Part shown: positions 18,391-63,530 of the stretch, piece by piece
How positions within the stretch are numbered: position 1 is the stretch's first letter
Layout of the letters: each line of letters starts with the position of its first letter
Assembly (NCBI GenBank): GCA_040285825.1
Contig: JAUPSS010000001.1
Coordinates: forward strand, 2,108,001 to 2,172,000
From: Eukaryota sp. TZLM1-RC
Lineage: Eukaryota; Protista; Metamonada: BaSk clade
Reading direction: 5' to 3'
Length of the DNA stretch: 64,000 nt
Position numbers and translations under genes: made by a program
Notes under the pieces: generated by a model
What the model was told of the DNA's origin: nothing
What the model saw: only the letters and a program-made list of their open reading frames with translations
Databases searched by the model: none

Positions 18391-18394
18391 ACAT

Positions 18395-20925: not shown

Positions 20926-22049
20926 ATGATCGATTTTCTGGACTTCAAAACTACAACAGACTTATGCTCATATCTCTCTTCTACAGAATACGATTCACTT
21001 AGTTTTGCTGTTGATATCGGAGGAACCAATCTTCGAACAGCTTTTGGTTGTCACAAAGATACCACATTCAAGGTTTTACTCCTTCCTTCACATCGTACTT
21101 CTGATGCAAATACTGTGCTCGATATCATAAAAGGTCTTGCATTTGAACTTTCCCAATGTTCATCCAATTTCACAATTTGCAAAACTGTAGTTTCTGTTGC
21201 TGGTCCAATCGATCCCTCCTCTGATACTCTGTTTCTCACTAATTTCACTGGATCAAAGGAACTCCACATTCCGTCACTGCCGTCACTACTATTTCCTCAA
21301 GACCGATCCTACTTCCTGAACGATCTTACAGCTGCGTGCAATGGTATTCTAACCCTCAATTCTGCAGGTTCTATGAACTCTTACTTTAAACCTCTATGGC
21401 CCAAAGACCTCACATGTGATCTTTCTCCCTTGAACTATCTGGTAGTTATGGCTGGTACTGGGTTTGTTTGCTTTGCTCTAGCTCTAACTGTAGCTTTGGT
21501 GTAGGTATCTTGATTCACCACAACAATGAATTCTTAGTGCTCCCTTCTGAATACGGCCACTCTACACTTGCTCTGACGGGCCCAGCTTATGATCTAATGG
21601 CAAGTAAGGAACAGGCCTTTGCTGCTTTTCTCTCCTCTCAGCTGTATGATTGTAAGCACTTTCCTGAATTCGAAGATGCTGTTTCTGGAAGGGGACTAGA
21701 AGCTGCTTATAGGTTCCTCAGTAGTGGAGAAGTACTCACTGCTGGTCAGGTTTCAAAGCGTGCGATTGAGGGCGAACAGACTGCTATTGATGCTACTAGG
21801 TTGTTTTATCGGCTGTTATTTAGACTCGTACAGCAACTGGCCATTGGGATTGGTTGTAAAGGGGTACTGTTATGTGGGGATAATCAGGTCGCAAATGACC
21901 CTATTGTGAGTGGAGAGGAATTTTTGGAGGAGTTGAGGAAAGTGTTTGAGAACCATCCAAAGCAACATTGGTTGAAGAATGTTCGTGTTTGCAGGCAAGT
22001 TGAGAAGATCAATTTAAATTTGGTTGGTGCTTTGGGATATGAACAGTAA
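20926..22049 (+). CDS. glk: Glucokinase, bacterial Glk-type
   Basis: VDIGGTN, VAGP, LTN, LNDL, GTG/FG (joined by 32-nt intron 21462-21493), PSEYGH, SGRGL. Confidence 0.9.
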
Positions 22050-26700: not shown

Positions 26701-29700
26701 ACGATGTTTTAGAAGTTGTTCACAAATCCATTCGAAAATTCTCATTACGCAAATGCCACGATTCACTTTCCTCTGTGGTTGATGCACACACTTTCACAGT
26801 TGTGGCCCCAGTCAATCAATCAACCATCTCCAAACTTCTGTCAACAAATTTCGCTAAACTTCAAACCGAAGGCTTTCTTACACATCCAATCAAAGTTGAA
26901 GTAACCAGTGAGTTCAAGTTACCTGAAAACTCTCCCTCAATTGATGGCCGATCTTTCGTTCAGCGTTGGATTGAGTCTATTCCTATTCAAGTTGCCCGTA
27001 TCGATGGTGGAGTCTTCCTACCCCTTCAAGATGGCCATGACTCTTCCGAATGGTTACAAATGGAACAAGTACATGGAATTACTGCTCAACAAATAGCTAA
27101 ACAACTTCGTTTTGGAGTTTTGGAACTAATCTTCAGTGGTTTTCCTTCCTATCCCATATCAGTTGTGGTTTGTGCTGGTAGTCAATCATCTGGTAAAAGT
27201 TCCTTCCTCAACCATCTTTTCAACCACTTTTTTGACGTTGCTGGATCTCGAACCACTCAGGGTGTTTGGTTTGGAGTACGTGTCTTTGAAGAACGGATTT
27301 GGCTTGCTATTGATCTTGAAGGTCTTGGTAGTTTTGAAAGAACTGCACAAGAGGATTGTTATCAGTCACTGTTCGGTGCCGCTCTTGCTCAATGTTTTAT
27401 TCTTCGAACTACCCATCACTTTGATCGTTTTATTCAAAATTGTTTGAACAGTTGGTCTGAAGCTGCGGTAGTTCTAGCTACAGGAGATGATTTGTTCAAA
27501 GGAACTTTGATCATGGCACCAAGAGATGTTTCTGATGAAGCAGCTGGGGAGGTTATAGAAGATTTCACTGTCCATTTGCAACCAATCTGGGACGAATCTC
27601 TGAGGATTCAGGAAGGACACCAACGTCATGCTCTGTCCATTTTTCCAACAACCAGAGTCATTCCTTGGCCAAGTTACGCTGCTTTTCCTGATTATAGCGA
27701 AGAAATTGGCCTTCTTGTGGACGATTTGATCAATGAGGAACCTCGCTTCACATCACCTTCCAGTTTTCACCAAACTGCTACCTTGCTTTTGGCCAAACTC
27801 TATGTACAAGATTTTACTTCACTCTCCGAAACTGCTTTAAAACAGTTAATTGACGAAGTAGAGTCCTCACTTCCTGATCTCATTGCTGTGGGAATGATTG
27901 GACCAATCGAAGGACAACAACTTCAATACCTACCAGATGATGCCTTAGAACAGTGGCTTTCAGAAGCTGTAGTTGATGATCATTTTTCAAATACCCATTC
28001 TCTTCCACTTTCTTTACCATTGACCAGTGATCAACAGCAAAGATTGTTGTCCTCACAATGTATCTTAGGGCAACACAACAATCTTTCAATTCAAGAATTT
28101 CCTGATGTAGGCTTGTTCATTGCAGCTCCTACCTCCCTGCAGTCAGCAAAGAAACAAGGTGATCAAATAATCTTTGAAAAACTGGCTTCATTCTTTACTA
28201 CAAATATACTGGTTCAACGTCATCGTGGCGACAAGTCCCTTTTTGAGTCATTCCTTCAATCAATACTCACTCGTAGGAGACTCTCCATAATTCAGTGGTT
28301 CAAATCAATAACTGTTGACCATCAGAAAGAATCCGTTTTCACTCGAATGGGAAACGATGTTCAAACAAAGTTAGATGGTCTTGTTGAAAGATACATGCTT
28401 TGCAGAGGGATTTGTCGTCACCTTGGAAAGAATCAGTCCAATGCTTGTAACCTTGAATGTTCTTTGCTTGTAAATCATGAGGGAGACTGCTCTTGTCTCG
28501 GTGATCATGCTTGTGAAAAATCGTGTTCCATTTGCCCTCAAAAGCAGTGCTCACTTGGTGCAGGACATGACTCCAATTGCCTATGCTCTGCTGGTCATGT
28601 TTATGGACAAGAATGTAGTCTTAATCACCACCTTGGATGTGCTTCTTCCTGTATTCGTCAAAAGAATCATGAAGGGGATTGTCTTTGTGGAACTCCATAT
28701 GAAGCTCACTTGTGTGGTCACGAATGTAGCCTACCAGGCTGCAATGACAAATGCCAAGAGCCCCATCATGTTGAACACTCTCGTCATCACTGTGGATCAG
28801 GGGGATGTCCTCATAAATGCCCTTTGTGTCAACGTATGTGCTGCTCTACGGATCATTTCCATGAACAAGAATCAGATCAACATCTTTGTGGTAATGATCA
28901 TAACTGTCCCCATGAATGTTCCAAGCGAGGCAATTGCGAGGTACTGACTCATTTGCGTCAGCGGGAAGAAACGTACGTGACATCAACTGGAGATCAAATA
29001 ACTTATCAGCTTTTTTCTGAGCAAAACGCTGTTCGTAGGCAGTGTGGTGTCTCCATCAGCAGAAAATGTACTTCTCATCAAGGCTCTTGCGATTGTATCG
29101 CAGATTCCCACTTTTGTGATGTAAAATGTGATTCTTGTGGATACTTTTGCATGTTACCCATTGATCATGAAGGACCACATTCAGCGACTCATGGCAACAT
29201 GGGAAATCTTCGTCTCGTTTCTTCATCTCAAGAAGTAAGAGTTGGTAGTGTTGGTACTTTTGGCCGAGGGGATTCTGGAATTTGCTTGACATGCACCAAT
29301 TCCTGCCGTGAGTTTGGTAGAGGTCATATTCATCTGGTTCCTTCAGATCACCCTAAATTAGATCACATTCCTGACACTTCAAAGAAACCTCAGTCTACAA
29401 CTTATGAAAAAGGTTTTGAATTCTTCGAAGTAACATGTGAAGCATATTGGGAATATGTCCTGGAATTCGATCCAAATTTCCAATCTGCTGAGCTTGAATT
29501 GTTCAAAAAATGTCCCGCTGTCTGTAGTGCTGACCATGAAGATAAAGTTTTTTGTGAGCTTGAGATCTTTCATGAACCTTATCAGGGAGAGCTTCCCTCC
29601 ACTGTTCCTAATGGTTACATCTCTCGTGATGGACATGTTTTTTCTTGCACTCACTACGTTGGTGGTAACTTCCACACCTTCCTTATTTTTGATAGAAGTG

Positions 29701-30272
29701 GGTCAATGTCTGATTCATCAGCTCAACCAACATTATCGTGGATAACTCAAAAAAATAAGCTTGGTGCTGTCATTGAAGCAATCTATCATTATATCAGTCG
29801 TAGAGTTCAACAAAACCCTAATGACTTATTTTCTTTTGTTACTTTCAACAGTTCTGCTTCTGTTCTTCAGTCCAGTGTGCAGCTCCCGGCGAATCCCCAG
29901 TCCAACATTTCGTCCATCATGTCTGGGATTTCTCCAAGTGGTGGCACCAGTTTTTACCGTGGCTTTGAAGTTGCTATCAATAAATGCAAACAAATCATCA
30001 CCTCTAGACACAAACCGATCTTCATCTTTTTATCAGATGGCTGGGATGGAAATGAACATGAAAGAACTCGTCAGCTTATCCGTTCGCAGTTTAAATCATT
30101 TCCAGAGACAGTGATTCATACGATTGGTTTTGGTGACGGTGCAGGTCATAGCTGGCTTCAAGAAATCGCATCATTAGGTAATGGTAACTACCATAGAACG
30201 ACAGATACTATTTCTCTTTGTGATACTTTTGTTGGAATTTCTGCCCAGCCAGATCGTAGTGCTTTTGTATAG
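23771..30272 (+). CDS. Giant RING - GBP/atlastin-like GTPase - Cys/His (NF-X1-like) repeats - vWA protein, split by two frameshifts
   Basis: RING CPIC...CSSC...CPFCR; G1 GSQSSGKS, RTTQG, DLEG; long C/H repeats; vWA MIDAS DRSGSM, GGT, LSDG. ORFs 23771-24652, 24580-25725 and 25602-30272 are each offset by -1. Confidence 0.8.
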
Positions 30273-31259
30273 TTGGAATGTTTTTACTGGTAATAAATCC
30301 TCAGTTTTTGACTTGTTTTGGAGATTTAAGATGGAGACAGTCATTATTTGTTTTTACTGTACTGTATCAATTTCACATTCCCTGTTGACTTGGAAATGGG
30401 ATGGACAATCATCACTACCACAACATCAGGAGGCTACTGGTCAATAAATCCACGTTCCTAATGCAAATTCACATTGTTCAATATCAAAATACCAACTCAT
30501 TCACTCAATGACGTTTTTCCACTCATTTGATGTCTCTCGTCAGTAAAGTTCTCTTTTCTTAAAATAATCAATTTTGTTTATGAACTATTAATCTAGACAA
30601 TTTCCAATTTCAATAACCAGACTTTCATCTCTTCCAAATGATCACTTTTATTAAAAAAGGTGTCAGTGAATGAAAGACATTCATCCGTCAATATAGTCGT
30701 CAAATAATGACTAAGAATGACGTTATCCGCCTTTGTTCATTTGAACTAAAAGTTTTGGTTATTTGAGGAAGTTATGTATCTTAACAATTTCAACTACGCA
30801 AAGAATCAACCACACTGTTTCTTGCATATGTCGACATAAACACGTGAGTTCAGAAGAAAATTCAAAGTAATAAAGCTGCGATGTTCTACATTACTCGACT
30901 TTGTTGCTTTTCGTGCACTAAACATAGACAAATAACAGGAAGTTTATGACAGGAATATAAGAAATCAGGAATAATAAAATACAAACTACAATTTAAATCT
31001 ACGATGACGTGATCTACCTTCCTAAAAGGGAAGGTCACGTTTAGCCACAGCTAACAACTTCATGCTATTTTTCATTATTTGAAACAACAACAGATATGTT
31101 TAAGAATAGATCCTTTATCCAAAAACTTTGGACTGAAACAATGTTCTAGAGCAAATGTTTTCTCATTTTCAAAATGTGTAATCATGTTTTTGTTTTGAAC
31201 TTTCATCGGTCAAAATTCCAAAAATACAGTAATGAAAAACGAATTGAACATGATGGGTT

Positions 31260-31890
31260 GTTCTAAATTGATAACTTATCGTTCTTAATTACATGATGCT
31301 GTTAGAGACACTGTTTCTATTATGGCTTGAACTGCAACAATTTCGTTTATTAAAGAGCCTCTACTGAAAGAAAAATTGTCATTGAATAGTTTTGGTTCTG
31401 ATGATAGAGGTGATGTATACTGTGATTGGATTGAGAACTGTGAAGCTGTTGTTGACTTTGTCTCCTGTATTGTTACAAATGACACTTTGGTTCAAAGAAG
31501 AAATTAATCCTCTAAGTGCTCTTGAATTAAAAGCTAAACAAAAACATAGAAAAAATGACAAAGATATCCAAGACGCTAGCTGATAGAAACAGACCACTTG
31601 TTTTTATTACCTTTCCATTTTCTATAATCGGAAGACTATCAGTAGAAGCAGGACAAAACATGGTTCGAAATAAATAAATAAATAAATTAATATGAAGATT
31701 TGATAACTTTTTAGGCGCTCTTGAATTCATTTTGCCATTATTGATAGATTGCCTCGGTTTTTCAATCGGATTAGAGAAGCTTTTGCTAGACATCAAGCAG
31801 ATCAAGATTTTGTAAAGGAAATGTTGGTTTAAGCAATTTAGTTCCACTAGTTATGAGTTTATTTTGTTGAGTGTGCAAGTCCAATAAACA
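31260..31890 (+). mobile_element. RLE retroposon family A 3' fragment
   Basis: Homologous to 18395-19200 (LHDAVRD, KEPLL, RGDV, KHRK) with the same 3' tail. Confidence 0.8.
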
Positions 31891-41276: not shown

Positions 41277-41367
41277 TAAAAAGTGATCAAGTGAATTGTG
41301 TATACAAAAGCAAAGTTCAATTTGAGTTATCTTGTCAATTGACAATCGACAAATTTGACCCAAATCA

Positions 41368-41890
41368 TTTATTGAACTTGCACACTTAATTAGATTAACT
41401 CATAACTAATGGGACGAATATCATTGAACCAAGATTTCCTCTACAAAATCATGATCTGCTTGCTGTCTAGCTAAAGCTCTTCCTTGACCAAAATGAAATT
41501 CACTGAATAGCTGAAATATGTTCAAAACTCAAATAACATCTTTTTCATTGAACCGATCCTCACAATTGTTGTAATGATAGAATTATTTCACCATTCAGAC
41601 CTGTAATGTTGCAAGTGACACTGTGGTTCAAAAAGGAATACTTAATCCTGTAACAGCTCTTGAATATAAAGCGAATGAAAAATATAGAAAATAAGACAAA
41701 GATATCGAAGAAGCTGATGTTGATAGAAACAGACCACTAGTTTTTATTGCTTACCCATTTTCTATAAACGGAAGACTATCAGTAGAAGCAGGAAGTTTTT
41801 TGAATGAAAACCAAAAATTGGTTCAAGAAAAAACAATGGAGATTTGCTATCTTTTTGTGGCGGTCGATAATTCAATTTGCTACAATTAAT
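41368..41890. mobile_element. Two family A RLE retroposon fragments (minus 3' tail 41368-41480; plus fragment 41585-41890)
   Basis: Sequence similarity to 18395-18780 and 31460-31890. Confidence 0.75.
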
Positions 41891-42205
41891 AGTTAATTCC
41901 ATTATTATTATTATTAATTCCATCAGTTCTGATTTAATTTTATGAAATGTTGTAGTTCATCATAAACTAATAAATTTGACTTAGAATGCATTTGACTTGC
42001 ATTTCACCACTCCCAGAAGATTTTCTGGTTTACAAGATAACTTGTTTGCCCTAAAGCGTATTGCTGTCTTGGATTAAGTCTTCATTGTAACGTTCATTCT
42101 GTTAGGTCAATAATGAATACCAATTATGACCCATTAGCATGTAGTTTTGTGTACTTGAGAATAAACATCTTCTCACCCTCGTTTTATGCGTAGAAGCAAC
42201 AATAT

Positions 42206-48275: not shown

Positions 48276-49789
48276 TGATTTTACAATACAATTTCTATAT
48301 TATTTACACATCTGGCTCCAGACGATAAGAAGAGATCAAAAAACATGATTCAGAGTATAGAAGTTCTATTTTCACTTAATTCTTTATCGACCAAGTAGAT
48401 TTCCTGTCACAGTCTTTCATTTTACTGGTCCTCCAGATCAAATTTGCAAATGTTACTTAACTTCGATTGTCAGAAATAGAACCTGGGTCACAACGGAGAG
48501 TTCAAAAATATTGCAGACCCACAAAATATGGTGACTGAAAAATTGGCGAATTGTCAAAGGCCTCCGAAGATTCGCCACTTTGTTTCGCCGATTATATTTT
48601 TCTAAAAGAAAATAAAAAAAATAAAAAAATCAGATTTTTTTGAAAATCAATACTATAAAATTGAACGATAAAGCAGTAGACATTCGTAAAAGTTAGTAGT
48701 TGAATTAATTGAACAAGAATTAAATGGGCGCTGTCGAATAACTACTTCTAATCAATTGAGAGTGAGTCTCTCAATATGATTAAAACTATAGCAGCAACAC
48801 TATACAGTAGTTACCGAGTGTGGGAAAAGGTAGTCGCAAATTTGTAATTGGTTATGAAAACAGCAACACAACAACTGATATATTCATTTAAAACAATTTC
48901 TAATTGAATAATTTAAGTCACAACATCATATTATTGGTACAAATACTGTGGCGGAATACTGTATACGTCTCACAAGATTGTACATGTACAAAAGAGATTA
49001 TAAATTGCATTTCATATTCTGGGTTCAATTTCTATTGTAAACTTGTTTCTGGAAAAAATGCACCCATTAAATATGGCAACTGATTAAATTGGCGAGTTCA
49101 ATGGTGTTGTAAAATTCACCATATTTTGTTCCATAATTTTTCGGAATACAGTAACTGTATACCACGATTACCGACACAATGGAGCAAATTGTCTCACTGA
49201 TAAATTATTTGGTGCATTTTCACTTCTGGGTCAGGTCAATACATTTTGAACATTGATTTTCTCATCAAATACAAGGTAGTGAACGTCTATTTTGGTAAAA
49301 TCTTATTGTATTCCAGCCAACACCATTTGAAAATGACAAATCAAAAGTTTTTTCAGTTCTGAACCTCATTTCAATATACAAAAGACTACTAGTCTTCAAC
49401 ACCTCTACCCACCAGAATATAAAACTGTAGGCTGATTGAAGAAGTTTAAGTTGAATTGTGTGATACGTGAATTCATTTGATTCATAAAGAAACACCAAGC
49501 TATCTATTTGTGAATATTGTGTTGCAATATTGAACTATTTTTCCAAATGAATTGAAATCTTAGATATTTGTCAACCTCTAATCTGATCAACATTTGCCGC
49601 AACAGAAAATGTTTAACTAAGTGTTAACAATAATTCGGATGGTAAAACTTTGAGGACGAAATGTAAAAGTACAACCACTGATGGAGATGCAAAGGAATAT
49701 TTTTTCCAATAATATATTGTTGAAAAGTGCATTTTGGATCGCATACTTTGTCTTTATACATTATAATATTGCACTTATGTAATCCCCAC

Positions 49790-50245
49790 ACTTGAAAAAT
49801 AAATTCATAACTAATGAGACGATATTCATTGAACCAAGATTTCCTTCACAAAATCTTGATCTGATGTCTAGCTAAAGCTTCTGTAATTCAATTAAAAAAC
49901 CGATGCAATCTATTTAAAATGGCAAATTGATTTTGAAAACGTCATAAAAAGTTTTCAAATCTATTCATTCTTTTTACTTGAACCATTTTTTGGAAACCAT
50001 TCAAAAAGTTATAGAAATACCTTTTGTAAAAATTACGTTTATAGAAAACAGAAAAGCAGTAAAAACATCTTTTTATCGAAAATTGAATAAGAAAGGATGT
50101 AGATAGAACAATGAAAAAGACGTCATCAGCATCTTGTTTTCGTTCATTCTATTTTTTGACTCTATTGGATTCAGAAACAGATTCGGACATCAGTAAAAAA
50201 AGTAGAAACAATAATAGCGGCTCTGTAAGAATTTAAGTTAGATGG
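49790..50245 (-). mobile_element. Short internally deleted family A element retaining 5' and 3' ends
   Basis: 5' part matches 660-780; 3' part matches the family A tail. Confidence 0.65.
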
Positions 50246-50324
50246 ATTGTTTGAAGAGGAGAATGAGAAAAATAATAATTACGTTATAAATATAATACTA
50301 TAATACTATAAAACGATATAATTT

Positions 50325-51120
50325 TTGGCGTTCTCGAATTCAATTTGCCATTGTTAATAGATTACCTCGGTTTCTCCATCGAATAAGAGAAGCCTTAGCT
50401 AGGCAGCAAGCAGATCAAGATTTTGTAGAGGAAATCTTGATTGAATGATATTCGTCCCATTAGCCATGAATTAATTTAATTAAGTGTGCATGTTCAACAA
50501 ATAGTATATAATAATATGACATTATATCAATATTTTAAATATATTAAAATACATTCTTCGTACATTACAAAAACGACTGACTGGAACGTATGAAAATGAT
50601 CTTTATAAAAATATATGCAACTCAGCTGTTTTTAAATCATGATCTTCACTCATTGTTATTGGAAAAGGGTGTTTGTGAAAATCAGTCATCAGATTCTTCA
50701 CTGTTTGTAACCATTGAACCACGAAGATTTGGACTCTGTGCCACTAATGAAGCATTTGTAACAAAATAGAGATTGTATTTGAATATCCCCATTAATCAAT
50801 TATATCAAAAGAAAAATGTATTTTTTCGAATTCACCACAGCTCATTTTGTGTCATGCTATGAATTGTTCGAAAATGATAACTTAATTAACTTCATTACAT
50901 GATACTGATAGAGACACTGTTGTTTATCTGGCTCAAACTGTAAGAATTTCCTGTATCAAAGAGCCTCCGGTGAAAGAAACACTGTCATTGAATAATTTTG
51001 GTTGCGATGATAGAGGTGAGGTATACTGTGATTGGATTGAGAACTCTGAAGTTGCTGTTGCTTTTGTCTCCTTTAATATTCCTAATGACGCTTTGGTCCA
51101 AAGGAGAAAACTTAATTCTG
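50325..51120 (+). mobile_element. Family A RLE fragments (50325-50500; 50770-51120)
   Basis: Similarity to 18395-19320. Confidence 0.75.
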
Positions 51121-51266
51121 TAAGGTACTGGTTGAAAACAATGTCTTTATATTATTTAGTTTTTATTATTTAAAATTTATTGGAAGCAAATGCAACCTTC
51201 AACATGGACAAGACATAAAAGAATCACTAGAAAAATCCTAAATCCATCATACTATCATTTATTACA

Positions 51267-54200
51267 TCAGCCGTCTAAGATATCATGTGTTATACACTTC
51301 CAATCCACCTCTTGCCCGGTATAAGTTTTCTGAAAAACAGCTGCACCAGTATAGATTAAACAGAATGGTTCATCCAACAGATCTGTTTCTGGGCTAATCA
51401 ACTCAAAACTATTCTCTCTATATAACAATCCAAACGAGGGCTCTTTATTGACATCGACTGAATTACCATCAATTTCATTGGGTCTCTTGTGGCATTTGAC
51501 AAAGACACATAAGTTGGTGATCCACAATGGCAACTCAGAAAGATCATCGCCAACTTGAGATTCCCAGAAAACATCCAATCGATTTGGAGATGGGGCAACA
51601 TCGTTAAAAGAAACAATAGCCTGCAGAGCAGTTACAGTGATTTGTTGTTTGCTACTCAATTCAAAAAAATCATGAGCCAAAATCGTATCACAGCACGTTT
51701 TCAGTAGCTCATAGTTGTCGTTGCAGTGCGCAAAGGCCTCCAGCAATTTCTCAACAGAATTATCATGTAAAAACTTTAACAACAGACAAAGACGAGTATA
51801 ATCCACACAAAATTGAGGCCAATCATCAGAAAAGAATGAATTCAACCGTCGAAGAAAATCTTTTTCTTCCACACCCAATTGTTCAAAAACCTCAAAGGAA
51901 AATTTTGATGAATTGGAACCCACAAAATCGAGACACCAATCAATTAAAGTACTTGTTGATGGCTGCTGATAGGGAAATTCTAAGACATATATCAAAGCTT
52001 TTAAATAGTTCACAGAAGCATGATATGTTATGGTTTTTTCATTTTTGGGAAGTGAGGTAACTGCATTTGAATAATATTTGAGAGCATTTTCCAAATCTTC
52101 AAATTTATCTAATGAATGGAACGTTTTGCTTGATAAATATCGAAACATGTCTGCTAAAGCGACGGAAAAGACGACATCAGTAGACATAACATTTCCTTCC
52201 TCAACAACAACTACTTTGCTTTTAATTGATTTGTAGTTTGATTGATTAACATAGACATTCTTCAACAGTTTTAACATCAAATGATACAAAACTGATGATG
52301 GTTGTGCTTGAACAATACTAACAAGAGAATCCCAATGCTCGTTGATAAACCTCCATGTAATATCTGATGAACTTTGAAGAAATGATTGGCTTTTAATGGA
52401 TCGACCGATATTGTTAATTAATACAGATTCGTTCGCATAAACTTCTGCTAGCATATTAATGAAAATTTCTTTCTTGACATCAGGATAGGTTTTCAGCAAT
52501 AAATTGATGGACTCCAAATAGGAAGATTTCATTTGAATAAAAACTACACAGAAAATCTTTGCTACTGATAAATTCATGTTGATTGTACCGTCTTGTTGGA
52601 CATCCAAAAACCGTTGAAATAATTTAACATTTGCATCAGGACAAAGAAGAAGGACAACAACATTTTTCCGATTAATTGAGGTGATAACATGCAAGGTACA
52701 AATACAATGAAGCAAAGCTCGATAGAGTGGTGTTTGCACGGATTTGACAAGTTTTTCAATGATAGTGGGTGCGTTTGAGAAACCTTCCTGGAAGATATGC
52801 AATCCCAGATATAAGAAGTCTGGAAAATGAATACCATGTCCTTTAATATTTGAATAATTGGTCAAATCAGTTTCAATCCGAACATGTTGGAGTAGAATAT
52901 TTAAGGCACGTTCGAATTTACTAGAACACAATTCCGATTGGCTGGGAGAAACGTAATCAACATATCTAAATTTTCTATTGTTCCGCTTTCTACTTACAGT
53001 TTTAAATGTATTCAAAACAAGGCGGATGAACACGAGTGAAACTGGGTTTTTGAATGGATACTGGGATGATTTACAGAATTGATCAACTTTATTCCAAGAT
53101 TCATCATCTAACTCAGGACAATATAAATAAACAACGTGTGTGGTGGGAGCAAGAATGTCTCCCAAGCTTCTGAAATAGTTATTCAATTTGCCATACTTGG
53201 AACCAGAATAAACAAAAGCAGCGCAATCTTCATTATGTTTTGATAATTCGAGAATGGACAACAAAATTGCAGTACGTGCTCCAGAAAATGGCTCCTTACT
53301 GTGCACCGTCAACTTCGTGCATGGATCATGATAACTTTGCTTGAGGATATCACATAAATTTTCAACTCCACTATGTATAGGAATGAGACATTGTGCGGAG
53401 AAAAGCTCAAGTTTTGGCTTACAGCCCTTTAGAAAACTAACGTAATCAGCTCTTTGATCACGTGGAACATCACTAACAGGAAATCTTGTGAAAGACTCAG
53501 ACAGTACTGGATGAAAGAAGCGAAAACGACGACCAGAAGATTCTTCTCGTGTAACAAAATCAAAAATTTGGAAGCTTGACAGACTTGAGAACTCATCATT
53601 ATTGTTGCTATTGCATCTAGAATTCGATAAAGGCTCAAGAGGTAATAGATTGTTTGGAAATCCAATACATTCTGCAGACATTCCCTCCCTGAACTTTCCG
53701 ATGATTTCTGGTAAATGAATTGTGGAAACCTTATAAATATATCTATTCTTAAAGGATGCGACTTCATCTAAGTTAATCTGTTCAAAATATATTGCTTTGA
53801 GATTAATCTCAGAGGTTGGAAAATTCTCCATCTTAAGAAGATCAATGACAGAAGTTTCAGATAAATCCAAAAACGATAAGAATGGCAAACTCAATAAATT
53901 CCACAAAAAATATAGTCTATAAGGATTGTCTGAAAAGATTTCAGTAGAATTAAACAACAACGACATCTCCTTAAAGCTTTGGGCTAGAGACCGTGGAAAA
54001 CGTTGCGAGAATATTTGGTAGAAATTAGAAGCTATATGAACTCTTGAAAGCAGGCTATTTCGATCACCACAGCGTAGCCAAATACCTCTTGAATCCCGAT
54101 ACTTGGAATTGGCAGACACAACTTGTAATGGGGATTGTTGAATAGGAATTTCCATTAAAGTCACGATTCTGGTGTTACCATCGGGATCTGTCCATTTCAT

Positions 54201-54584
54201 CAACGGATGAAGATTGAAATTCACAGCATGACCAAAGCAGGTGCTGAACAGCTCATGAGCAGACAGTGTGGAGTGGGAAAATTTAAGAGATGTTGCTTTG
54301 GCTTTGTAATCACGAAGAACGCTTGACAAGGGAGGGTCATTATCACAAGGATCCGGCCAGTATACCACAATAAAGACAGATCTAGAGAAAGAAAGACCCT
54401 TGAACTCTGTCCCCGAGTTATGCATTGCACAAACAGCCTTGACAAATTCAATATTAGCGTTAGACTGTGATGATTGTACAGGAAAGTAGTCCTTAAACTC
54501 CAAACCTTGATCCTCATGAAGTTTGTTGTCAAAGTAGTCAATATAGTAGTCAATGAATTTGAGTACATCTTCTTTTGGAACCAT
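51267..54584 (-). CDS. SAMD9/Avs9-like protein: AlbA_2 (Schlafen-type nuclease) + STAND-like NTPase + helical/TPR region
   Basis: Intact 1105-aa ORF; HEDQGLEFK, KAVCAMHNS, WLR.G (AlbA_2); FLKG..P, HSKEPFSGART.....LEL, YLYCPELDD, LVFIR (SAMD9-like NTPase motif order). Confidence 0.7.
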   Translation of the reverse strand: MVPKEDVLKFIDYYIDYFDNKLHEDQGLEFKDYFPVQSSQSNANIEFVKAVCAMHNSGTEFKGLSFSRSVFIVVYWPDPCDNDPPLSSVLRDYKAKATSLKFSHSTLSAHELFSTCFGHAVNFNLHPLMKWTDPDGNTRIVTLMEIPIQQSPLQVVSANSKYRDSRGIWLRCGDRNSLLSRVHIASNFYQIFSQRFPRSLAQSFKEMSLLFNSTEIFSDNPYRLYFLWNLLSLPFLSFLDLSETSVIDLLKMENFPTSEINLKAIYFEQINLDEVASFKNRYIYKVSTIHLPEIIGKFREGMSAECIGFPNNLLPLEPLSNSRCNSNNNDEFSSLSSFQIFDFVTREESSGRRFRFFHPVLSESFTRFPVSDVPRDQRADYVSFLKGCKPKLELFSAQCLIPIHSGVENLCDILKQSYHDPCTKLTVHSKEPFSGARTAILLSILELSKHNEDCAAFVYSGSKYGKLNNYFRSLGDILAPTTHVVYLYCPELDDESWNKVDQFCKSSQYPFKNPVSLVFIRLVLNTFKTVSRKRNNRKFRYVDYVSPSQSELCSSKFERALNILLQHVRIETDLTNYSNIKGHGIHFPDFLYLGLHIFQEGFSNAPTIIEKLVKSVQTPLYRALLHCICTLHVITSINRKNVVVLLLCPDANVKLFQRFLDVQQDGTINMNLSVAKIFCVVFIQMKSSYLESINLLLKTYPDVKKEIFINMLAEVYANESVLINNIGRSIKSQSFLQSSSDITWRFINEHWDSLVSIVQAQPSSVLYHLMLKLLKNVYVNQSNYKSIKSKVVVVEEGNVMSTDVVFSVALADMFRYLSSKTFHSLDKFEDLENALKYYSNAVTSLPKNEKTITYHASVNYLKALIYVLEFPYQQPSTSTLIDWCLDFVGSNSSKFSFEVFEQLGVEEKDFLRRLNSFFSDDWPQFCVDYTRLCLLLKFLHDNSVEKLLEAFAHCNDNYELLKTCCDTILAHDFFELSSKQQITVTALQAIVSFNDVAPSPNRLDVFWESQVGDDLSELPLWITNLCVFVKCHKRPNEIDGNSVDVNKEPSFGLLYRENSFELISPETDLLDEPFCLIYTGAAVFQKTYTGQEVDWKCITHDILDG

Positions 54585-54612
54585 TATATGATAAGTGGGA
54601 AATTCCCATAAG

Positions 54613-54692
54613 TGTTGCCTAAAGTCTATTGTAGTAAAGAAAAAGTCTGATTTAATTTCTATTCATATTATATAAGCCTTAGGGCGCCAACA
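54613..54692 (-). repeat. 3' LTR (80 bp, TGTTG...CAACA)
   Basis: 4 mismatches to 61550-61629; PPT adjacent at 54693-54710. Confidence 0.9.
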
Positions 54693-54821
54693 CTGCTTCT
54701 TCCCTTTTTCAAAATAAATCAGCTTATATGAATATGAAATAAAAACTATATACAAATAACGAAATAACTACAATAAATGCATATAATCGATATAATATAA
54801 ATAATCGATATAAACTAAGAA

Positions 54822-57800
54822 TTAGCTCCTCTTCCTAATTCTATTGCTGCGTCTAGGCTTCTTAGAAGGCGTAGACTCATTGGAGGTACCTTGTCGTCGA
54901 CTAATGGTACGTTTTCCAATTTTCTTATTATCCTTACTAAATAACTTATAAGCTTCTGAGTGTTTAACTGAATGGAGTGGCTCTTCCGTTGTCTCACCGC
55001 CAAACCACTGAACAGTACAGAAACTACCTGAATCAGAGTGGTATTCTGAGAGGATTTTCTCTATAACGTGTTTTTCGGAATCGCCTGCAGCGACTGCTTT
55101 GAGGAACTCAATGTCCTGTGGATTTTCTGCGTTATAGATTTTGCAATCTTTCTTGGCAGCTTTTAATTCTGTGCCAGTAGTAAGATTCTTCAATAATAAA
55201 GTAGATTTGGATGAAAGGTCAATAACTGAGAATGGTCCATTCCAAGATCCATGCAATTTATTATTTTGCTTGGTTTTACGTAAGACGTAGTCACCAATAT
55301 TAAATGCTAAATAACACGAATTAGTACTATCTACTGAAGACGGAGTATTTAATGTTTGGTGACGCTCTGCTTCTTCCCTTTTTTCTTGTAGACGAGTGTT
55401 TTTCATTTTGATGTCATCTAATAAGGGGATATTAGTTTCAAATTTGGATAAATTTCCTAATATATTAGCAGGGTCTGTTCTTGGGCTAATCGAAAAACCG
55501 AACATGAGTTCGATTGGGGTAAAACCAGTTTTTCTGCTTTTAGTAGAATTTATTAATAGTTGGGATATAGGTACGTATGTAGACCAATTTCCGTAATCGT
55601 TGAAATCTATTAATAGTTTCCTTAAGCATTGAAGAACGTCTCTATGTTTACGTTCTACAAGTCCATTACTTTCTGAATAGTGGGGAATTGAGTTACTCAT
55701 CTCAATCGCTAATCTGTTACACACTATCTTAAAAGTCTCATTGGTGAACTCAGGACCATTATCACTATGAATTAACATAGGTATGCCAAAGATAGCGCAA
55801 ACATTCCAAATCAAAGCATCTGCGGTTTCTAAGGCATTGAGTTCTTTTAGAGGGACTAAGATTGTATATCCAGTAAAAGAGTCTACATATACTAATAGAT
55901 ATTTGTTTCCTTCGTTGTCAGAATTTAGGGGTTTCAATTGTATCGACGTTTAATCTGGCAAAAGGACGATCTGCCCATAAAGATCCTGTGGAAGGTGTTT
56001 TTGATCTTTTAACTGGAGCCGTTTTTTGACAAGTTGGACATCTTTTGACATGATTAATGAGGTCCTTTCTCATATTGGGCCAGTAGAAATCGCTTTTGGA
56101 TAGTTTGTGTAAACTATCGTTTTTGCTAGGGTGACCAGATTGAACCAAACCATGTGTTAATAGTAGTGCCTGTTTTCTGAGGGTCTTTGGAATCAAAATT
56201 TAGTTGTTATTATTTTTCCAAATTTGAGTATTTTCATCTAGAATTGCATTTTCAAATAACGAGTCGTTGTTGTTTTTGGCTATTTTTTGTTCAGATCTTA
56301 TCTTAGAGAACCAAGAAGAAAAAATAGGTAGGTCTTGGTGTCTACTTAGAGATGAGATTGATGGGATGTCTTCAAGATCCGAATCAGAATCATCGTCTAG
56401 TGGAGGTATCTCGTAATTTGAAAGTAAAGTATCTGGTATATTTATGCTACAAATAGAAGGAGTTTTCTCGTTTTGATCCAAATCAATATTCCTCGATAAC
56501 ATATCTGCCCAATGGTTGTCTTCACCAGGTTCGTGGACTATGTCAAAGTCGAATTCAGATAGTATCGGCAGCCATCTCTTTACAATTCTATTTTTCTCTG
56601 GGGCTGTAGCCAGGAATGCAATGTTTTTATGGTCTGTGAAAATTGTTAAATGTCTAGTTAACAAGTAGCTTTCTAAACAACTTCCAGTTAAAATCAAAAG
56701 TATTGCATATAATTTTTTTTGTAACGTGGACCATTTTCTTTGTGTTTCTGTAAGTAATCTACTATAGAATGACAAAGGTTTTACTTTCCTTTTATTTAGC
56801 GGGGTTCCTGCAGGGGAGTAGGGTTCAATTTCTTGCCAAATGACACCTCCTACTGCTACATCTGAAGCGTCAGTACTTATCAATACTCGCTTGCCCGGAG
56901 CTGGTAATTCAAGGGGCATGTGGTTTACTATTAAGTCTTTTATTTGTTTTAAGTAATCGTCATGCTTGCTAGTCCATTTAATTATTCTGGGTTTTCCTTT
57001 AATTAGCTCGTTAATTGGAGCAATTAATTCAGAAATACCTGGAAGCCAATCTCTAATACAATTGATGGATCCTACCAATGAGCGAACTTCTTTCACTGTT
57101 TTTGGTCTAGGGATTCTCATCAAGGCTTCGATTTTTTTCTTACTTATAAATCTAGTTTTATCCTGGAAGGTACTTCCTAAAATGTCGATAGGGTGTTTTG
57201 ATGTTACGAATTTACATTTACGTAAGCCTATATTTACACGTCTATTTCTGGCGCATTGGAGGACTCTTTGTGATCTCTTATAAAATTCTTCGAATGTCGT
57301 TCCAACTATTATGATATCGTCATTGTATATGAAAACGCCGTCTATTTGGAAAATTTCCATCATTATGTTTTGAAAAACTGCTGGGATGTTCTTTAATCCG
57401 AAGCAAGCTCTTTTAAACATGATTGACCTTCCAGGAATTGAGATTGATGTTTTCTCAATGTCCTTTTCAGCTACATTCATCTGCCAGAAAGCTTTTGGTA
57501 AATCAAGCGTGGCTATGTAATCTGCTCTACTTAAAAACTCTAAAATATCACTAATCCTGGGTAGATTAGGCTCTACTGAAATCGTGTTGGCATTGACTCC
57601 ATCTTTACCACTAAAATATCCCGTTAACCTGGGTTTCTTGCCGTCATGATATATAACTAAGACAATAGGAGAGCTGAATTTATAATTAGATTCAACTGCA
57701 TAGCCCATTTCGATCAGTTCATCAAATATTTTGTTGGCTATTTCCATTTTGCTGGGATTTAACCGTCTAGCAGGCTTGTGTACTATAGCATTCTCATCTC

Positions 57801-58224
57801 TGAAGGGGATTGTTAGAGGATTACAATCGATTCCTTTTCTATTAGGAGTTTCATTAAAAACATCGCTGAATAATTTTAGTAGGCTCGTTAATTTTAATTT
57901 ATTATTACTATCATCTAAATTTATCTCACATCCAGATCTTGCTAATTGCTCCTCAAAATCAGAAGGACTTGGTGATTGGTTATCTAAGTTCCCAATCGAA
58001 TGTTGAGCGAACCTAGAGTCGAATTCTGATTCTGCATTTAGCAAAGTGCGGCGTTCTTTGTCTAATCTAATGAAAAGACCATCATCCATCTGAAGCCCAA
58101 GTGCTTTTAACATGTTTGTCCCTATTAATAATTTGTTCGAACCCGGGATTATGGGAAGAGTATGTTTATAATGAACTTGTTGCGCAATGCTTCCAAACGT
58201 TGAACGACAGAATACCAGTTGCAC
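54822..58224 (-). pseudogene. pol: RT, RNase H, integrase, chromodomain
   Basis: LDLPKAFWQ, FGLKN, YNDD, TDASD, H...H..C..C, SDNG, ESNGLVER, IEKIL...VQWFG...EP; in-frame stop near 56200 and frameshift near 55930. Confidence 0.9.
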
Positions 58225-61200
58225 TCCTTAGCGATTTTGTGGATACGTTATTAGCTGGTAATAACTTAATAGTATCCTTGCTATTGATTGACATATGGCA
58301 TTGTTCAGCTAAATGTGCAGTAATAACTGAACAAAACGCAGCCGAATCTATAGTCGCAATCATTTTAATATCATTTATTGATATCTCCAGTCTTAGAAAT
58401 GGAGAACGCTGGGACCTGATGTGGTGTTCACTAACCGTAGAATTAATATCAAAAATACTATTGATATCAGAGCTGGTTTGGTGAATTTGTAGAGGAATTA
58501 AAAGATTTTGTTGAGCTGTTGGAAAGTTGTTGACTGGGTTTCCTAAATCGGTTGTTGATTGATTGTGATTGATTGCGTTAATGTGTACCCGATTAGGTAA
58601 TTTGCCTGTCCTGCTGTTCCGGTTGCTGTTGTTTATCCGTCTGTGAGGAACCGTACTCGAACAGGTCAGTTTTGACTCAGTAGGGGATGCGTTTGATGAT
58701 ATAACCTCTGTAGTGTTGATGTTATAGATAGGTCTGTACTGACATCTACCTTTATGACTTCCAAAACGGCCTCCACGGCCTCCAAATTTGAATCTATGTA
58801 CACGTCTACCACAACCACCTCGGCCCCTATCTACACTGCCTCTACTAGCAGGCGCCTCCTGTTTTCCTAATCTAAATCTTTCTTCTTTGGGAACTCTGCT
58901 TCTAGCACAACGAGGGTCTTTGCATTCGAATACAGTGTGGCCAACAGGATTGTTACCTTCGACGTTGCTGCAGAATGTACAGAATTTTGATCCTTCTCGT
59001 TCATGCTTTTCAGGGATGTATTTGTGTTGGGGGGTTCCTCTTGACTTTCCACCTGATCGTCTTGCTCGTTTTGATGGAGCCTGGGCTGATGGTGTTACTC
59101 CTCTTGAGTAAGTTCTCATCGCCGTGAGTCCCAAAGGAATATCTTCTTCGTTAGCCCTGTTCCTTAGTACATCCATTGTGGGCTTGTTTCCTGCTGTGTA
59201 ACACCAAGCGAGGAAATGTCTTCTTGTTGTCGATATCAAATCGAGTAGAGTTGTTCTGTTCGGTGAGTCCCACAAGGATTCCCTAGTCCATACTGGGAGG
59301 AGTTCGCTCGATATAGCAAAGTTATCCAAACCCATAAGGAAGTATTCGGCTATTAGAGCGGGAGATATGGTTATCAGCCCACTGCTTCCTCTAATTAAAT
59401 CGGGGATGGTTAGGTCGGTCATGTAGGTGGTCATTCTCAAAACGTCTCCAAAATCTTCTACATAACGACCAAACTCGTTGTCAGCCTCATGCCTATTGTG
59501 GATTTTCCTCCAGTTAATTCGAGGCTTCATTAGAGCTGTACCGGCCTCATGATATGATGTAAATTGTGTTTTTTTTAACAGAAATACCATGACGTCGGCG
59601 TCGGTATAATCAACACCGAGTAAACCTTGACTTTGCCATCTGGATAGAAGGCTAGGGTCAATCATGCTGGATATTCCTGTAGGGCAAGTGCTCATCATCA
59701 TGCTCCTAAATAAATCATAATAGTGGATTGGGGGTCCGAGCTTATCTGTTATAGCTGGGTCAATCCTTACCAAAGGCTGAGTTGTATCCCTGGTGATCTC
59801 GTCGCGTATATGTTTGGGGAGATCTTTAATCCTATCTTGGGTTATTTCTGCTTGGCCTTCTCCAAATAAGTGGGTAGCTATCATAAAGGCTCTGGTCCAA
59901 TCTGATTGACCTGGGGCTTCAAAGCTTCTATTGGCTATCTTTCGCCCGTATTTATCCCAAGTTTGATATTTTAAAAGAAAAGCTATGATAGACATTTTGT
60001 TGATAGGGTCATCAGCGGATAATCGAGGTCTTTTATAGTCGATATCCTTAGACCGTGGATCAATCTGTCTGTGAAGGCTACTAGCTATGCTCATGTCAAT
60101 AGCTCTTCTTGAGGATTGTAGGTCCTCGGTATGCATAGATCTGTCGGAAGAAGTGTTTCTTATTGAGGGTTGAGGAGGAGCCGTTTCTCCAACGACTGGC
60201 CCGTTCAACTCTATGTCTTCTCCGATTTCACGTTCCATAGGTTGGGAGGAAGTTGGTTCTTCCTGAGGAGCAACGTTTTGTCTAGTTACAGGTTCCGGGA
60301 CGTTCACTGTTGGAACGTGTTCGGGTATGCTGTCAATAGAGCAGACCTGTATTGGTTGGCTTTGTTCAGAAATTATAGGGGCTACAACAGGCAGTTTGGG
60401 AAGGTGGAGAGATGTGGATGGATTTCCCGTTACCCATTGTCTAAACTTTCGTTGTTTCGTGAACGAGTTACCATGTTGTTGGATGTAGTTGTTAGGACGG
60501 CTCCTATACGTGGATACAGCTGATCGTTCCGTATGAATGTTATTTAAAGCGTCTGCATCAAACCAGGGTGTTACTGGTTCAAGCTTGTCTTGTTCACTAC
60601 TATCCTCCTGCTCCATAAATTCCCTAAAATATCTGGGAGCACCCTCTGTCAGCTCCGTGTAATTATGGATTTCCGTATCAAAGTTAGGGTCAAACCAGGC
60701 AGGCAATTTGGATTGTAGGATGTCTTCCGAGTCGGTCCTACTTCTCTGCTCGATGGAGAGAAACCTTATTCTCCTGCCGTGTTGATCTAGGAAGGAGGCC
60801 TTCCAATCCAATCTATCTTTGATGGGAAGAGACATCATTTCATTGATTCTCTTGTCCATTCCAGAGATTCTGGGGCGGCGCTCTGCGTTACGCCCGAATG
60901 TCTCTCTACTCAGTTTATCAAGTGCCTTTATGAGTTCATTCCTTTCATTGAGGGGAATTTCCAATACCTTTTGGGTATCCCCAATCATTCCGAGGGTCTG
61001 GAAACCAACGTTTCTGCCTCTTTTTTGAATGTAACTCCATAAAGGGGGAAGCTGCTCGAACAGACAGAAATCTGTTGGTTCGAGGTAAGCCTCCGCATCC
61101 TCTCTTAATAACTTGTAGAACCTCTCGGAAGAGTCGTCTTCTCCCTCCATTTCATCCAGTTGAGATTGAATTTCTTCATATTCTCCTAATGGGGAAGACG

Positions 61201-61473
61201 TGTCTAAGGTGGGATTTCCATCCGTTCCCTTTGAGACAGGTTCTAGAATTGGGAGGGGAGAGGGAGCCGGGTCCGTTCTCGTTACCTCTTCTGTTGCTGA
61301 AAATGGAGGGACCTCGTCCACTCTTTCATCTTCTTCTAATTTAAGGGAGGGGGAGGTGGGATCCGGGTCCGTTGCCTTTTACCCTCTATATCATGTATAT
61401 GTGCCGCTGGTACCTGCTGCATATTAAGTGGGGGATTAGAGTCAGAGATATCTGGTTGGGAGATGTCTGACAT
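58166..61473 (-). pseudogene. Long gag + aspartic protease
   Basis: Knuckle CTFC...GHTVFEC; protease TIDSAA; probable start 61473 with a frameshift near 61380. Confidence 0.8.
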
Positions 61474-61549
61474 GCTGTAAAGTGTCTGGGGATGTTTACT
61501 AATGCTGAAGTTATGGTATACCTTTTGACTTTAAAATGGCCAATAATTA

Positions 61550-61629
61550 TTTTGCCTAAAGTCTATTGTAGTAAAGAAAAAGTCTGATTTATTTTCTATT
61601 CATATTATATAAGCCAAAGGGCGCCAACA
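61550..61629 (-). repeat. 5' LTR (80 bp)
   Basis: Direct repeat of 54613-54692; contains TATATAA and AATAAA on the minus strand. Confidence 0.9.
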
Positions 61630-61669
61630 TAAGTACACAATCTATTTTCGTGTGGAATAATTACAAAAA

Positions 61670-63530
61670 CTATCTACAACACAGATACTGAGGCCTTTCA
61701 TTGCCACTCATCCTCGCTTCAGCAATTGCAAACATATTCAGACAAGCCAACTTATTTCTATTGAAAAGCATTGTTGAGCCTTTGTTACTGAGTTTGCAAC
61801 TCTCGCTATTGCAAGCTAATAAACCATGACATGTAGTAACAGGGGTCTTTTCTCTTCTATAGAATCTGGGATTTTTTACTCTCAAAAACGTAGCAACCTT
61901 TTCAAAACAAACAGGACATTTTGCTGAAGTGAAAGCTTCATTAATCATCAATACTTCAAATCCATTTCTTTTCAGGAATTGAATCCATCCAATGCCTCGA
62001 GTAGGTCTCTGATGTTTCAAATTCTTAAAACCTTTTTTACCATAATCACCCATTAGTATTAAAGTGTCTTTTGGATTGCCAAACTGCTGAACAAGGCTTT
62101 GTAACAACCAACTTTCAGTCTTTTGCTTGTGAAGAAAAGCTTGCATTTTATGAATGTTCCACAAGTCAACACTGTAAAAGTCAATTGTCAAAAAAACTTG
62201 CCTAAGTTTGGCAACCACAAAGTTGGAAAAATCTATAAAAGTTGCTGAATTGGCAGCAAATGCGTGACAATTCGATGTTTGCATCTTCAATTGTCATTTC
62301 GTTAGACTCTATCAATTGGTTCCTGTCGTAATCTACCTCAGTATACTTTATCGCCCATCGTTTTTGCTTTTCATTCATCCTACTCTTCAAAGACCAGGAC
62401 ATTTGAGTCATTTTCAACCATTTGTACTTCTTGTCTTGATTCATCACCCGACTATTTCTTTGCTGTTCAGTTTCATATTCAGGCACCATGGCTAAGTCTT
62501 CATCAGTCTTTTTACTCGCAAGATACAATAAATCATGTTTTCCAGGATCACCAACAACAATTCGTTTTTCTTGAAAAGTATCAACATCAACATCATTAAT
62601 ATATAAATCAGAAATACCAGCCTTTTTTGTCTGGCTTACATTTCTGACTTTGTAAATCCTGACGAACAAATTCTACTGCAAAATTAAATCCATCTGTGTG
62701 GATAATGTTGTTGAATTTATAGCTCTTCTGTTTGAACATTGGTTGGTTTTAATCTAGAATATTAAACCAAAAGTCAAATTGCTGAGGTGGTTTGAATTTC
62801 GTAATTTGGGCTAATGTATTGTATAAATCATCCATCAATGTTTGTCTAATAATTGTCCATAGTGTTCTTGTATCAATAGCAATATCTCCTGGACCTACAG
62901 TGGATGAATCAGGAGAAATATGATAAGGTTTTTTCTCTCTACTGGAAATATATTGGGCAATTTGTAATTGCTGGTTTTAGGAATATTTGAGGATCTTTTT
63001 CAACAGCCTCTGCAAGAAAATATATATCCACTGGAAATATGTTGTCAACTAAATTCTCGTCAGTGACCAAATTTTCAATTTGACAACTAAATGGCTCAAT
63101 AATACCTTCAAATATGTCTCTAAGTTCTTTATTTCTTATATCATATTGTTCACATAAATCGAAAAATTCATCATTCAGAAGGTCTGAAATATTTTCTGGA
63201 TGATGAAACAAAGAACTCAAGCAATCTCTATCATCAATTAAAAACAAGTTTTGAATTGATGAAGCCTAATAAATCTATAATTTATTGTATATATTATATA
63301 TAAATAATTGTAGTTAATGGCGTTAAATATATACCCAGCTTGTGCATTTTTGATAACACTTTTTCCACATCTGGTTTGTCAAAATAAACATTAATAAATC
63401 GATTAATATGTTTTTCATAATTTAATTTCAAATTATTCTCAAAATTGTTGGAAAACATTACTGGAGCCATACTCAGGTGGTCTACTGAAACCATCAGTTG
63501 AAAATCGTGGAAAAAACTCAAATCTATATC
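61670..63530 (-). pseudogene. Fanzor1 nuclease pseudogene
   Basis: FENNLKLNY..HINRFIN, IAIDTRTL, IHTDG, RuvC-I VGDPGK, LMGDYG, RuvC-II INEAFTSAKCPVC, HGLLAC...C, NRNKLACLN, ERPQYL; multiple frameshifts. Confidence 0.88.

Follow-up and report, generated by a model that had tools for sequence, protein, structure and literature searches.

The minus strand of the analysed window, a 64,000-nucleotide stretch of contig JAUPSS010000001.1 (positions 2,108,001 to 2,172,000) of the metamonad Skoliomonas litria, carries at positions 51267-54584 a gene for a protein of 1105 amino acids (P0001) that, judged on its architecture alone, is very probably a strongly diverged STAND protein of the SAMD9/Avs9 lineage. 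Sequence comparison suggests that P0001 is built like SAMD9 and Avs9 yet is not a canonical member, because it lacks the nucleotide-site signature of the family, which combines an upstream His, the GG[T/S]T motif, an acid at Walker B, an Arg at sensor-1, and the His of the WHD. The gene and the predicted parts of its product, with residue numbers of P0001 in brackets, are as follows.

51267-54584, minus strand: SAMD9/Avs9-like gene (P0001, 1105 amino acids), single exon, from the open reading frame (ORF) list and gene call
54045-54527, minus strand: Schlafen/AlbA_2 nuclease-like domain (about residues 20-180), from Pfam, hmmsearch, hhalign, and the structure model
53550-54014, minus strand: shortened SIR2-like (Rossmann-type) middle (about residues 191-345), tentative, from motif, column, and model evidence
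52440-53477, minus strand: STAND NOD with FLKG/SLI-like insert, NBD, HD1, and WHD (about residues 370-715), of the SAMD9/Avs9 (nSTAND5) type, from hhalign, ESM, and structure
53271-53303, minus strand: degenerate P-loop (residues 428-438), from columns compared with 91 bacterial relatives
53112-53135, minus strand: Walker B strand (residues 484-491), from column counts, with a strand at 484-488 in the model
52800-52823, minus strand: HD1 motif PDFLYLGL (residues 588-595), invariant in the three Skoliomonas proteins
51510-52388, minus strand: helical, TPR-like putative sensor (about residues 733-1025), from the shallow-alignment model
51291-51437, minus strand: beta-rich C-terminal segment (residues 1050-1098), a possible OB-fold remnant, with strands in both models

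P0001 is encoded by a complete, single-exon host gene. The ORF runs from an ATG at 54584 to a stop ending at 51267, comprising 1105 codons with zero internal stops, and its intactness, noted in the initial annotation, was borne out as both start and end align with those of two paralogues (P0002 and P0003). The exact protein is on record once, in the 4.04-Mb contig of assembly GCA_040285825.1, where the proteins are labelled Eukaryota sp. TZLM1-RC; the organism is S. litria, a free-living anaerobic metamonad, in agreement with the proposed microbial-eukaryote host. The surrounding genes are ordinarily eukaryotic (SNF2, WD40, UCH, and LSM) and the codon use is host-like (relative synonymous codon usage r=0.85, third-position GC content 0.33) compared to r=0.61-0.65 for the retroelement ORFs, which together with the paralogue alignment support a complete and host-derived gene. 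Bacterial contamination was ruled out by the 4-Mb contig with eukaryotic genes, the host-like codons, and the presence of the paralogues on a second chromosome-scale contig. With a depth of 0-6 and a cluster of one, the gene looks single-copy, and a public run of DNA contigs covered it sparsely, with two short pieces at or near the gene displaying no differences.

The family template consisted of about 150 bacterial SAMD9/Avs9-family proteins, gathered via a GTDB scan with the family P-loop pattern (36 long ORFs) and a subsequent profile search that gave 120 further AlbA_2+nSTAND5 proteins. Among the 36 ORFs, 15 carried an AlbA_2-type head as in Avs9 and one, from Labedella endophytica, was PNP-headed, this being the species named for Avs6 (PMC12680541). 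The set was accepted as the right family because a profile dominated by it matched human SAMD9 structures at E=9e-50. Column counts were made on 91 bacterial relatives, part of them chosen by P-loop motif, and animal SAMD9 was compared solely via PDB searches and published residue numbers. The heads on the bacterial SAMD9-like core (L003-L122) varied, including AlbA_2, kinase-like/TCAD9, PNP, and DUF4145 types (e.g., L057, L059, L106, L047, and L021), and several of these core proteins came from Dehalococcoidia, Chloroflexota, and Streptomyces.

An alignment-free ESM feature search, the matches of which are leads by the tool's own calibration, placed the bacterial AlbA_2+nSTAND5 cluster top for P0001 (0.91, 201/256 features) with the SAMD9/SAMD9L clusters next (0.87), and residues 370-760 alone reached 0.95 to nSTAND5/nSTAND3 clusters. 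The family landmarks also occurred in the family order: E-x4-EFK, NS, FLD, FLKG, P-loop, and PDFLYLGL. The motifs quoted initially were all present, namely E24-x4-E29FK31, K49..C52A53..N56S57, W169LRCG, LYFLWNLLSLPFLSFLD240, F384LKG, and H428SKEPFSGART438.

Profile-profile statistics supported the SAMD9/Avs9-type NOD, in line with the P-loop/STAND fold expected in the middle region. Alignment of the three Skoliomonas proteins with the bacterial set by hhalign over residues 368-690 gave P=77.5% and E=1.9e-5 across 238 columns with a score of 42.6, approximately 12 standard deviations above 40 block-shuffled alignments (16.2±2.2, maximum 20.5). Single sequences scored 22.8 and 24.0, compared to at most 18.2 among 41 control segments taken from other window proteins, and residues 380-620 of P0003 matched Pfam nSTAND_NTPase5 at E=0.1. 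The PDFLYLGL motif corresponds to the bacterial PF(Y)FGL motif.

The nucleotide site was traced by register in alignments of approximately 16% identity, and a shift of one to two residues at Walker B is possible for P0001, the paralogues having no acid in the segment. The SAMD9 P-loop contains 742-GGT-744 with H737 in place of the lysine. Mg is coordinated by T744, D799, and D800, R837 serves as sensor-1 and H985 as the WHD His, and the closed form keeps its ATP (PMC13600222). The sites in register in P0001 were K430, G435-A-R-T438, Y488/C489, N525, and Y700, at bacterial columns conserved in 90-91 of 91 relatives, and the paralogues carried Gln, G-G-H-T, Thr/Gln, Gln, and His, respectively. 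G435-A-R-T438 aligned with SAMD9 G742-G-T-T745, retaining G435 and T438 while placing R437 at the Mg-binding Thr744 and K430 at the His737 position. The initial annotation had read H428 as the counterpart of the lysine-substituting His of SAMD9; this residue fell out of register, with K430 there instead, and is Val in both paralogues. The acidic Walker B that it described was not recovered either, as the column that is Asp or Glu in 91/91 relatives corresponded to Y488/C489, and the acids E491, D493, and D494 come later in the sequence and have no counterpart in either paralogue. The nucleotide switch therefore looks degenerate, with the Mg-binding Thr, Walker B acid, sensor-1 Arg, and WHD His all replaced. 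The losses at Walker B and sensor-1 are common to the paralogues, whereas the WHD His is Tyr in P0001 and His in the paralogues. Loss of the Mg ligands combined with a basic residue (Arg or His) at the Thr position suggests either that no nucleotide is bound or that a metal-free mode is used.

The N-terminus had been assigned to AlbA_2, and the match was end to end and above the nulls while weak and below the Pfam gathering score: SLFN_AlbA_2 aligned with residues 24-177 at E=0.0041, covering model positions 1-115 of 118. The bacterial Avs9 AlbA profile matched P0001 at a pairwise hmmsearch E=1e-5, and hhalign scores of 20.5 and 25.5 compared to nulls of about 13-14 (25.5 versus 14.2±2.6). This weak signal beat all shuffled and real-protein controls and was driven by P0001, the paralogues alone not scoring. 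Alignment register and spacing gave E24, E29, E46, and D78 as candidate catalytic residues and K31 and K49 as candidate RNA-binding residues. E24, E29, K31, and N56 were invariant across the three paralogues, D78 was Glu in the other two, and E46 and K49 fitted the SAMD9 spacing in P0001 only.

Cleavage by SAMD9 requires E184, E196, E218, and D241, and tRNA binding requires K198, K214, and R221 (PMC10246899). Within the SAMD9 sequence E218 lies ten and R221 seven residues ahead of N228, just as E46 lies ten and K49 seven residues ahead of N56 in P0001, which would equate K49 with R221 and N56 with N228; E29/K31 match E196/K198. D78 follows the core strand as does SAMD9 D241, given a ten-residue insertion. 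The spacing of E24 is that of Schlafen and Avs9, being five residues before E29, compared to SAMD9 where the first acid is twelve residues before the second. The toxicity of Avs9 depends on its AlbA_2 site (PMC12680541), an acidic nuclease site of E14/D19/D45/E65 that differs in that the second acid in P0001 is Glu rather than Asp. An active metal-dependent RNase head is plausible. No match to a SAM domain was found in P0001, which begins 23 residues before E24.

The middle of the protein is suggested to be a SIR2-like domain, approximately 90 amino acids shorter than in bacterial Avs9. It retains D240, in a column acidic in 90/91 bacterial relatives, and was modelled at pLDDT (predicted local distance difference test) 71-85 with an Avs9-rich alignment. 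The tail is suggested to be TPR-like followed by OB. An AlphaFold model from the three sequences was confident only in the helical stretch at 740-870 (pLDDT 65-84 over most of it), for which Foldseek returned TPR/HAT solenoids, matches judged to be TPR noise, and P0003 matched the Avs9 tail at a pairwise E=6e-5. Four to five strands at 1052-1098 had pLDDT under 40 in both models, with a Y.G..W ending that resembles the Avs9 OB end.

With 91 bacterial rows in the alignment, AlphaFold modelled residues 11-80 and 110-180 (AlbA_2), 200-300 (Rossmann-like), and 390-640 (NBD and HD1) at pLDDT 62-87, including 65-85 for the AlbA_2 domain, and the WHD and last 100 residues under 50. Foldseek matched SAMD9 at E=6e-10, and structural alignment placed model residues 191-762 on chain residues 389-1021 of SAMD9 (9zjr) with Z=14.4, 404 aligned residues, and a root-mean-square deviation of 11.1; Avs5 (9jap) followed with Z=14.0, 299 aligned residues, and a deviation of 6.4, compared to Z of about 10 for generic AAA+ proteins. 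SAMD9 and Avs5 were thus the best matches in the proposed structural check, and the result shows compatibility and no more, since the 91 Avs9-like rows pull the model to that fold.

P0002 was the only relative retrieved by an exhaustive phmmer search of 1.84 billion representatives (E=9e-70, 31% identity). P0002 and P0003 form a tandem pair, 97.8% identical, on contig JAUPSS010000003.1 (locus L002) and align end to end with P0001 at 29% identity (37% in the AlbA_2 domain). The pair differs by 20 synonymous and 40 non-synonymous changes, corresponding to a pN/pS ratio of 0.55. Tandem duplication and deep divergence between paralogues fit an immune receptor. Word-index homologue searches retrieved P0001 itself only, and these were weak blanks since the second missed P0002 from its own query; scans of metagenome and viral contigs found nothing, nor did tblastn against plasmids, and a viral structure library gave generic AAA+ matches only. 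Short, diverged AlbA_2-coding fragments of the P0002/P0003 genes were observed at L002 14297-14491 (between the pair) and 21094-21135 (after it), pointing to several rounds of duplication and decay at this locus.

Bacterial Avs9 has an AlbA_2-SIR2-like-STAND-TPR-OB organization (PMC12680541). Like it, P0001 has no SAM domain and opens directly with AlbA_2, in which the spacing is E-x4-acid-FK; it further carries the FLKG/FLRG insert, a P-loop ending in a Lys-less G-x-x-T, and a PFxFGL-like HD1 motif, and is of similar length (1105 versus approximately 1220 amino acids). The Avs9 type was the best language-model match. It differs in its identity of approximately 16%, the shorter SIR2-like part (as above) and TPR region, the eukaryotic host, the missing Asp of the F.KD motif, and replacement of the P-loop His and Thr, Walker B acid, sensor-1 Arg, and WHD His. 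Animal SAMD9/SAMD9L is a tRNA-Phe anticodon nuclease (PMC10246899) with which P0001 shares the predicted domain order, a non-canonical P-loop, E46 at the position of E218 by spacing, and the best structural match. Unlike SAMD9, P0001 has no SAM domain and approximately 140 fewer amino acids between nuclease and P-loop, its OB domain is putative, and none of the stable Mg-ATP ligands T744, D799/D800, R837, and H985 is kept. The NOD fold and nSTAND5-type features are shared with Avs5 (SIR2-STAND, nSTAND5), in which SIR2 is the effector and AlbA_2 is absent, whereas AlbA_2 is the effector candidate in P0001. Schlafen RNases (SLFN11/13/14) likewise carry E-x4-EFK and an acid downstream of the core strand, and differ in bearing SWADL/helicase modules instead of a STAND-TPR body.

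We consider it rather probable, by analogy, that P0001 is an autoinhibited sensor-effector that would cut tRNA when triggered and serve cell-autonomous defence. The protein would rest in a closed state until a foreign ligand, viral or otherwise invader-derived, bound the helical tail or broke interdomain contacts. Protomers might then associate and bring the AlbA_2 heads together, allowing these to cleave tRNA by means of metal ions coordinated by E24/E29/E46/D78 and so shut down translation. Closure and opening would proceed via protein contacts, the NOD probably no longer being a Mg-ATP switch as in SAMD9, because of the four replacements in its nucleotide site described above (Thr, Walker B, sensor-1, and WHD). 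We infer the SIR2-like, TPR, and OB identities, nuclease activity, tRNA substrate, oligomerisation, immune role, and loss of nucleotide binding from these comparisons, and the tRNA cleavage and antiviral role are extrapolated from SAMD9 and Avs9.

Several results weigh against this reading or the lineage assignment beneath it. Searches of the whole protein against Pfam, PADLOC, NCBIfam, and PDB sequences were blank or noise, and a plain hidden Markov model search of P0001 with the bacterial profile was not significant. A deeper, cruder template lowered the NOD score to 33.0 versus 16.7±3.1 and the hhalign probability to 30%. The profile score of the SIR2-like middle was not above the null, its best local match falling on the W..V.DFD motif, and the tail of P0001 did not match that of Avs9 significantly in sequence. 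The three-sequence AlphaFold model failed (mean pLDDT 35), leaving the biased model for structural comparison. Within the nuclease head, E46 is out of register in the paralogues (Arg, with an Asp one place off), and the Asp of the bacterial F.KD motif, present in 72/72 AlbA heads, is Ala (A50) in P0001. A long terminal repeat (LTR) ends 28 nucleotides upstream of the ATG, cutting the upstream region, and we know of no Skoliomonas virus. Colinearity with SAMD9, as claimed in the initial annotation, accordingly held for the NTPase module (42.6 versus 16.2±2.2) and modestly for AlbA_2, and did not extend above chance to the SIR2-like middle or tail. The AlbA_2 head on a SAMD9/Avs9-type STAND body similarly stood statistically for the NTPase and more weakly for AlbA_2, with the SIR2-like and TPR/OB parts compatible though unproven.

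Of the other explanations, a protein of the same ancestry and fold repurposed as an RNase or RNA-binding scaffold for housekeeping, translation stress control, or transposon-RNA surveillance is the one that best survives, although we regard it as unlikely. In its favour are the degenerate nucleotide switch, the lack of a known trigger or virus, and the position of the gene between mobile elements in a genome that is 55% repetitive (PMC11316075). The tandem duplication, 29% paralogue identity, and pN/pS of 0.55 are instead typical of immune receptors, and every tested relative is a defence protein.

The mobile elements flanking the gene bear on two further explanations and are as follows.

54613-61629, minus strand: Ty3/gypsy-like LTR retrotransposon, from a direct repeat and reverse transcriptase, RNase H, and integrase Pfam matches
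61670-63260 (far end approximate), minus strand: frameshifted Fanzor/TnpB-like pseudogene, a neighbour of the P0001 gene, from a weak Cas12f1-like TNB match (E=0.0044)
50500-51184, strand not given: high-copy interspersed repeat just 3' of the P0001 stop, with copies at 18971-19319 and 31258-31516

The retrotransposon has LTRs of 80 nucleotides at 54613-54692 and approximately 61550-61629, 96% identical, and a four-nucleotide target duplication TAAG at 54609-54612 and 61630-61633. The insertion might have split the promoter off an intact gene, leaving P0001 a silenced or decaying copy in which the nucleotide-site losses reflect relaxed selection. The closeness of the LTR end to the ATG, the fairly recent insertion indicated by the LTR identity, and the WHD His replaced here and kept in the paralogues would favour this. 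It nevertheless appears improbable: the 1105 codons are unbroken whereas the adjacent retroelement and Fanzor genes are disrupted, the Walker B and sensor-1 losses common to the paralogues predate the insertion, and the LTR points the same way as the gene and could itself provide a promoter.

That the resemblance is superficial, P0001 being an AAA+/STAND-like or orphan protein of other descent whose motifs match by chance, is very improbable. The 13-19% identity of P0001 to the bacterial set, the blank standard searches, and a structure match resting on a biased alignment would permit it, whereas ESM features, Pfam AlbA_2, and profile-profile comparison, which share no inputs, agree on the family with the landmarks in order. 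Cargo or an addiction toxin of a mobile element such as the upstream Fanzor-like element, whose stop lay only 64 nucleotides from the P0001 ATG on the same strand before the retrotransposon inserted, and with the high-copy repeat following the P0001 stop, is the least credible explanation given that P0001 behaves as single copy, its codon use is host-like and unlike that of retroelement ORFs, and L002 shares with the locus no Fanzor neighbour and no flank beyond common repeats.

Regarding distribution, SAMD9-family proteins were placed in animals and bacteria by Mekhedov et al. (PMC5445408), and structure searches by Legrand et al. (PMC12680541) gave none in plants, fungi, algae, or protozoa, an absence on which the idea of convergence between SAMD9 of animals and Avs9 of bacteria rests. 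No literature report of a SAMD9-family protein in a protist was found. The databases behind the published absence probably did not yet include this genome, released in 2024, so the surprise is partly a sampling gap. An AlbA_2-STAND architecture in a metamonad, a lineage distant from animals, would add a third data point on SAMD9/Avs9 convergence, as well as a candidate effector of innate immunity for a group in which hardly any are known. More tentatively, and somewhat short of an even chance, P0001 may represent a third, deeply diverged SAMD9/Avs9 branch outside animals and prokaryotes, with an active tRNase head on a STAND body that does not bind Mg-ATP. If true, this would be a nucleotide-independent STAND immune nuclease with a basic P-loop residue replacing Mg ligands, and the origin of the animal and bacterial forms (convergence, transfer, or an early eukaryotic ancestor) would be reopened. 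With all Mg-ATP ligands apparently lost, P0001 further offers a natural test of the need of the SAMD9 switch for nucleotide. A quick NOD tree with 43 bacterial rows, and no animal rows or outgroup, gave a Skoliomonas branch of approximately ten changes per column that was unplaceable. An ESM Atlas cluster of 609-amino-acid nSTAND5 proteins includes Discosea (Amoebozoa) among four members with known phylum, and other protists may contain a SAMD9-type NTPase module.

Further features were observed around the gene and in the window. The palindrome TGGGAAATTCCCA at 54596-54608, inside the 28 nucleotides between LTR and ATG, may be a small hairpin, a factor site, or chance. The LTRs are unusually short, the gag, pol, and integrase frames are frameshifted, and a related LTR end occurs at L002 3748-3939. 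A second Fanzor/TnpB-like gene at 9898-11100 had a weak Cas12f1-like TNB match and no blastn similarity to the 61670-63260 copy. Contig depth over the repeat downstream of P0001 was approximately 570-680 for most of its length versus 0-6 over the gene. An interspersed repeat family of approximately 400-500 nucleotides was identified at 49787-50506 (two inverted copies), 18391-18778, 31417-31888, and 41367-41892, with two copies in L002. Adjoining ORFs at 23771-30272 encode domains of the RING finger, RHD3/URGCP-like GTPase, and vWA types and may be pieces of a single large gene for an immune-type GTPase, interrupted by frameshifts or introns, and a tRNA-Ser(AGA) gene is located at 2106-2189.

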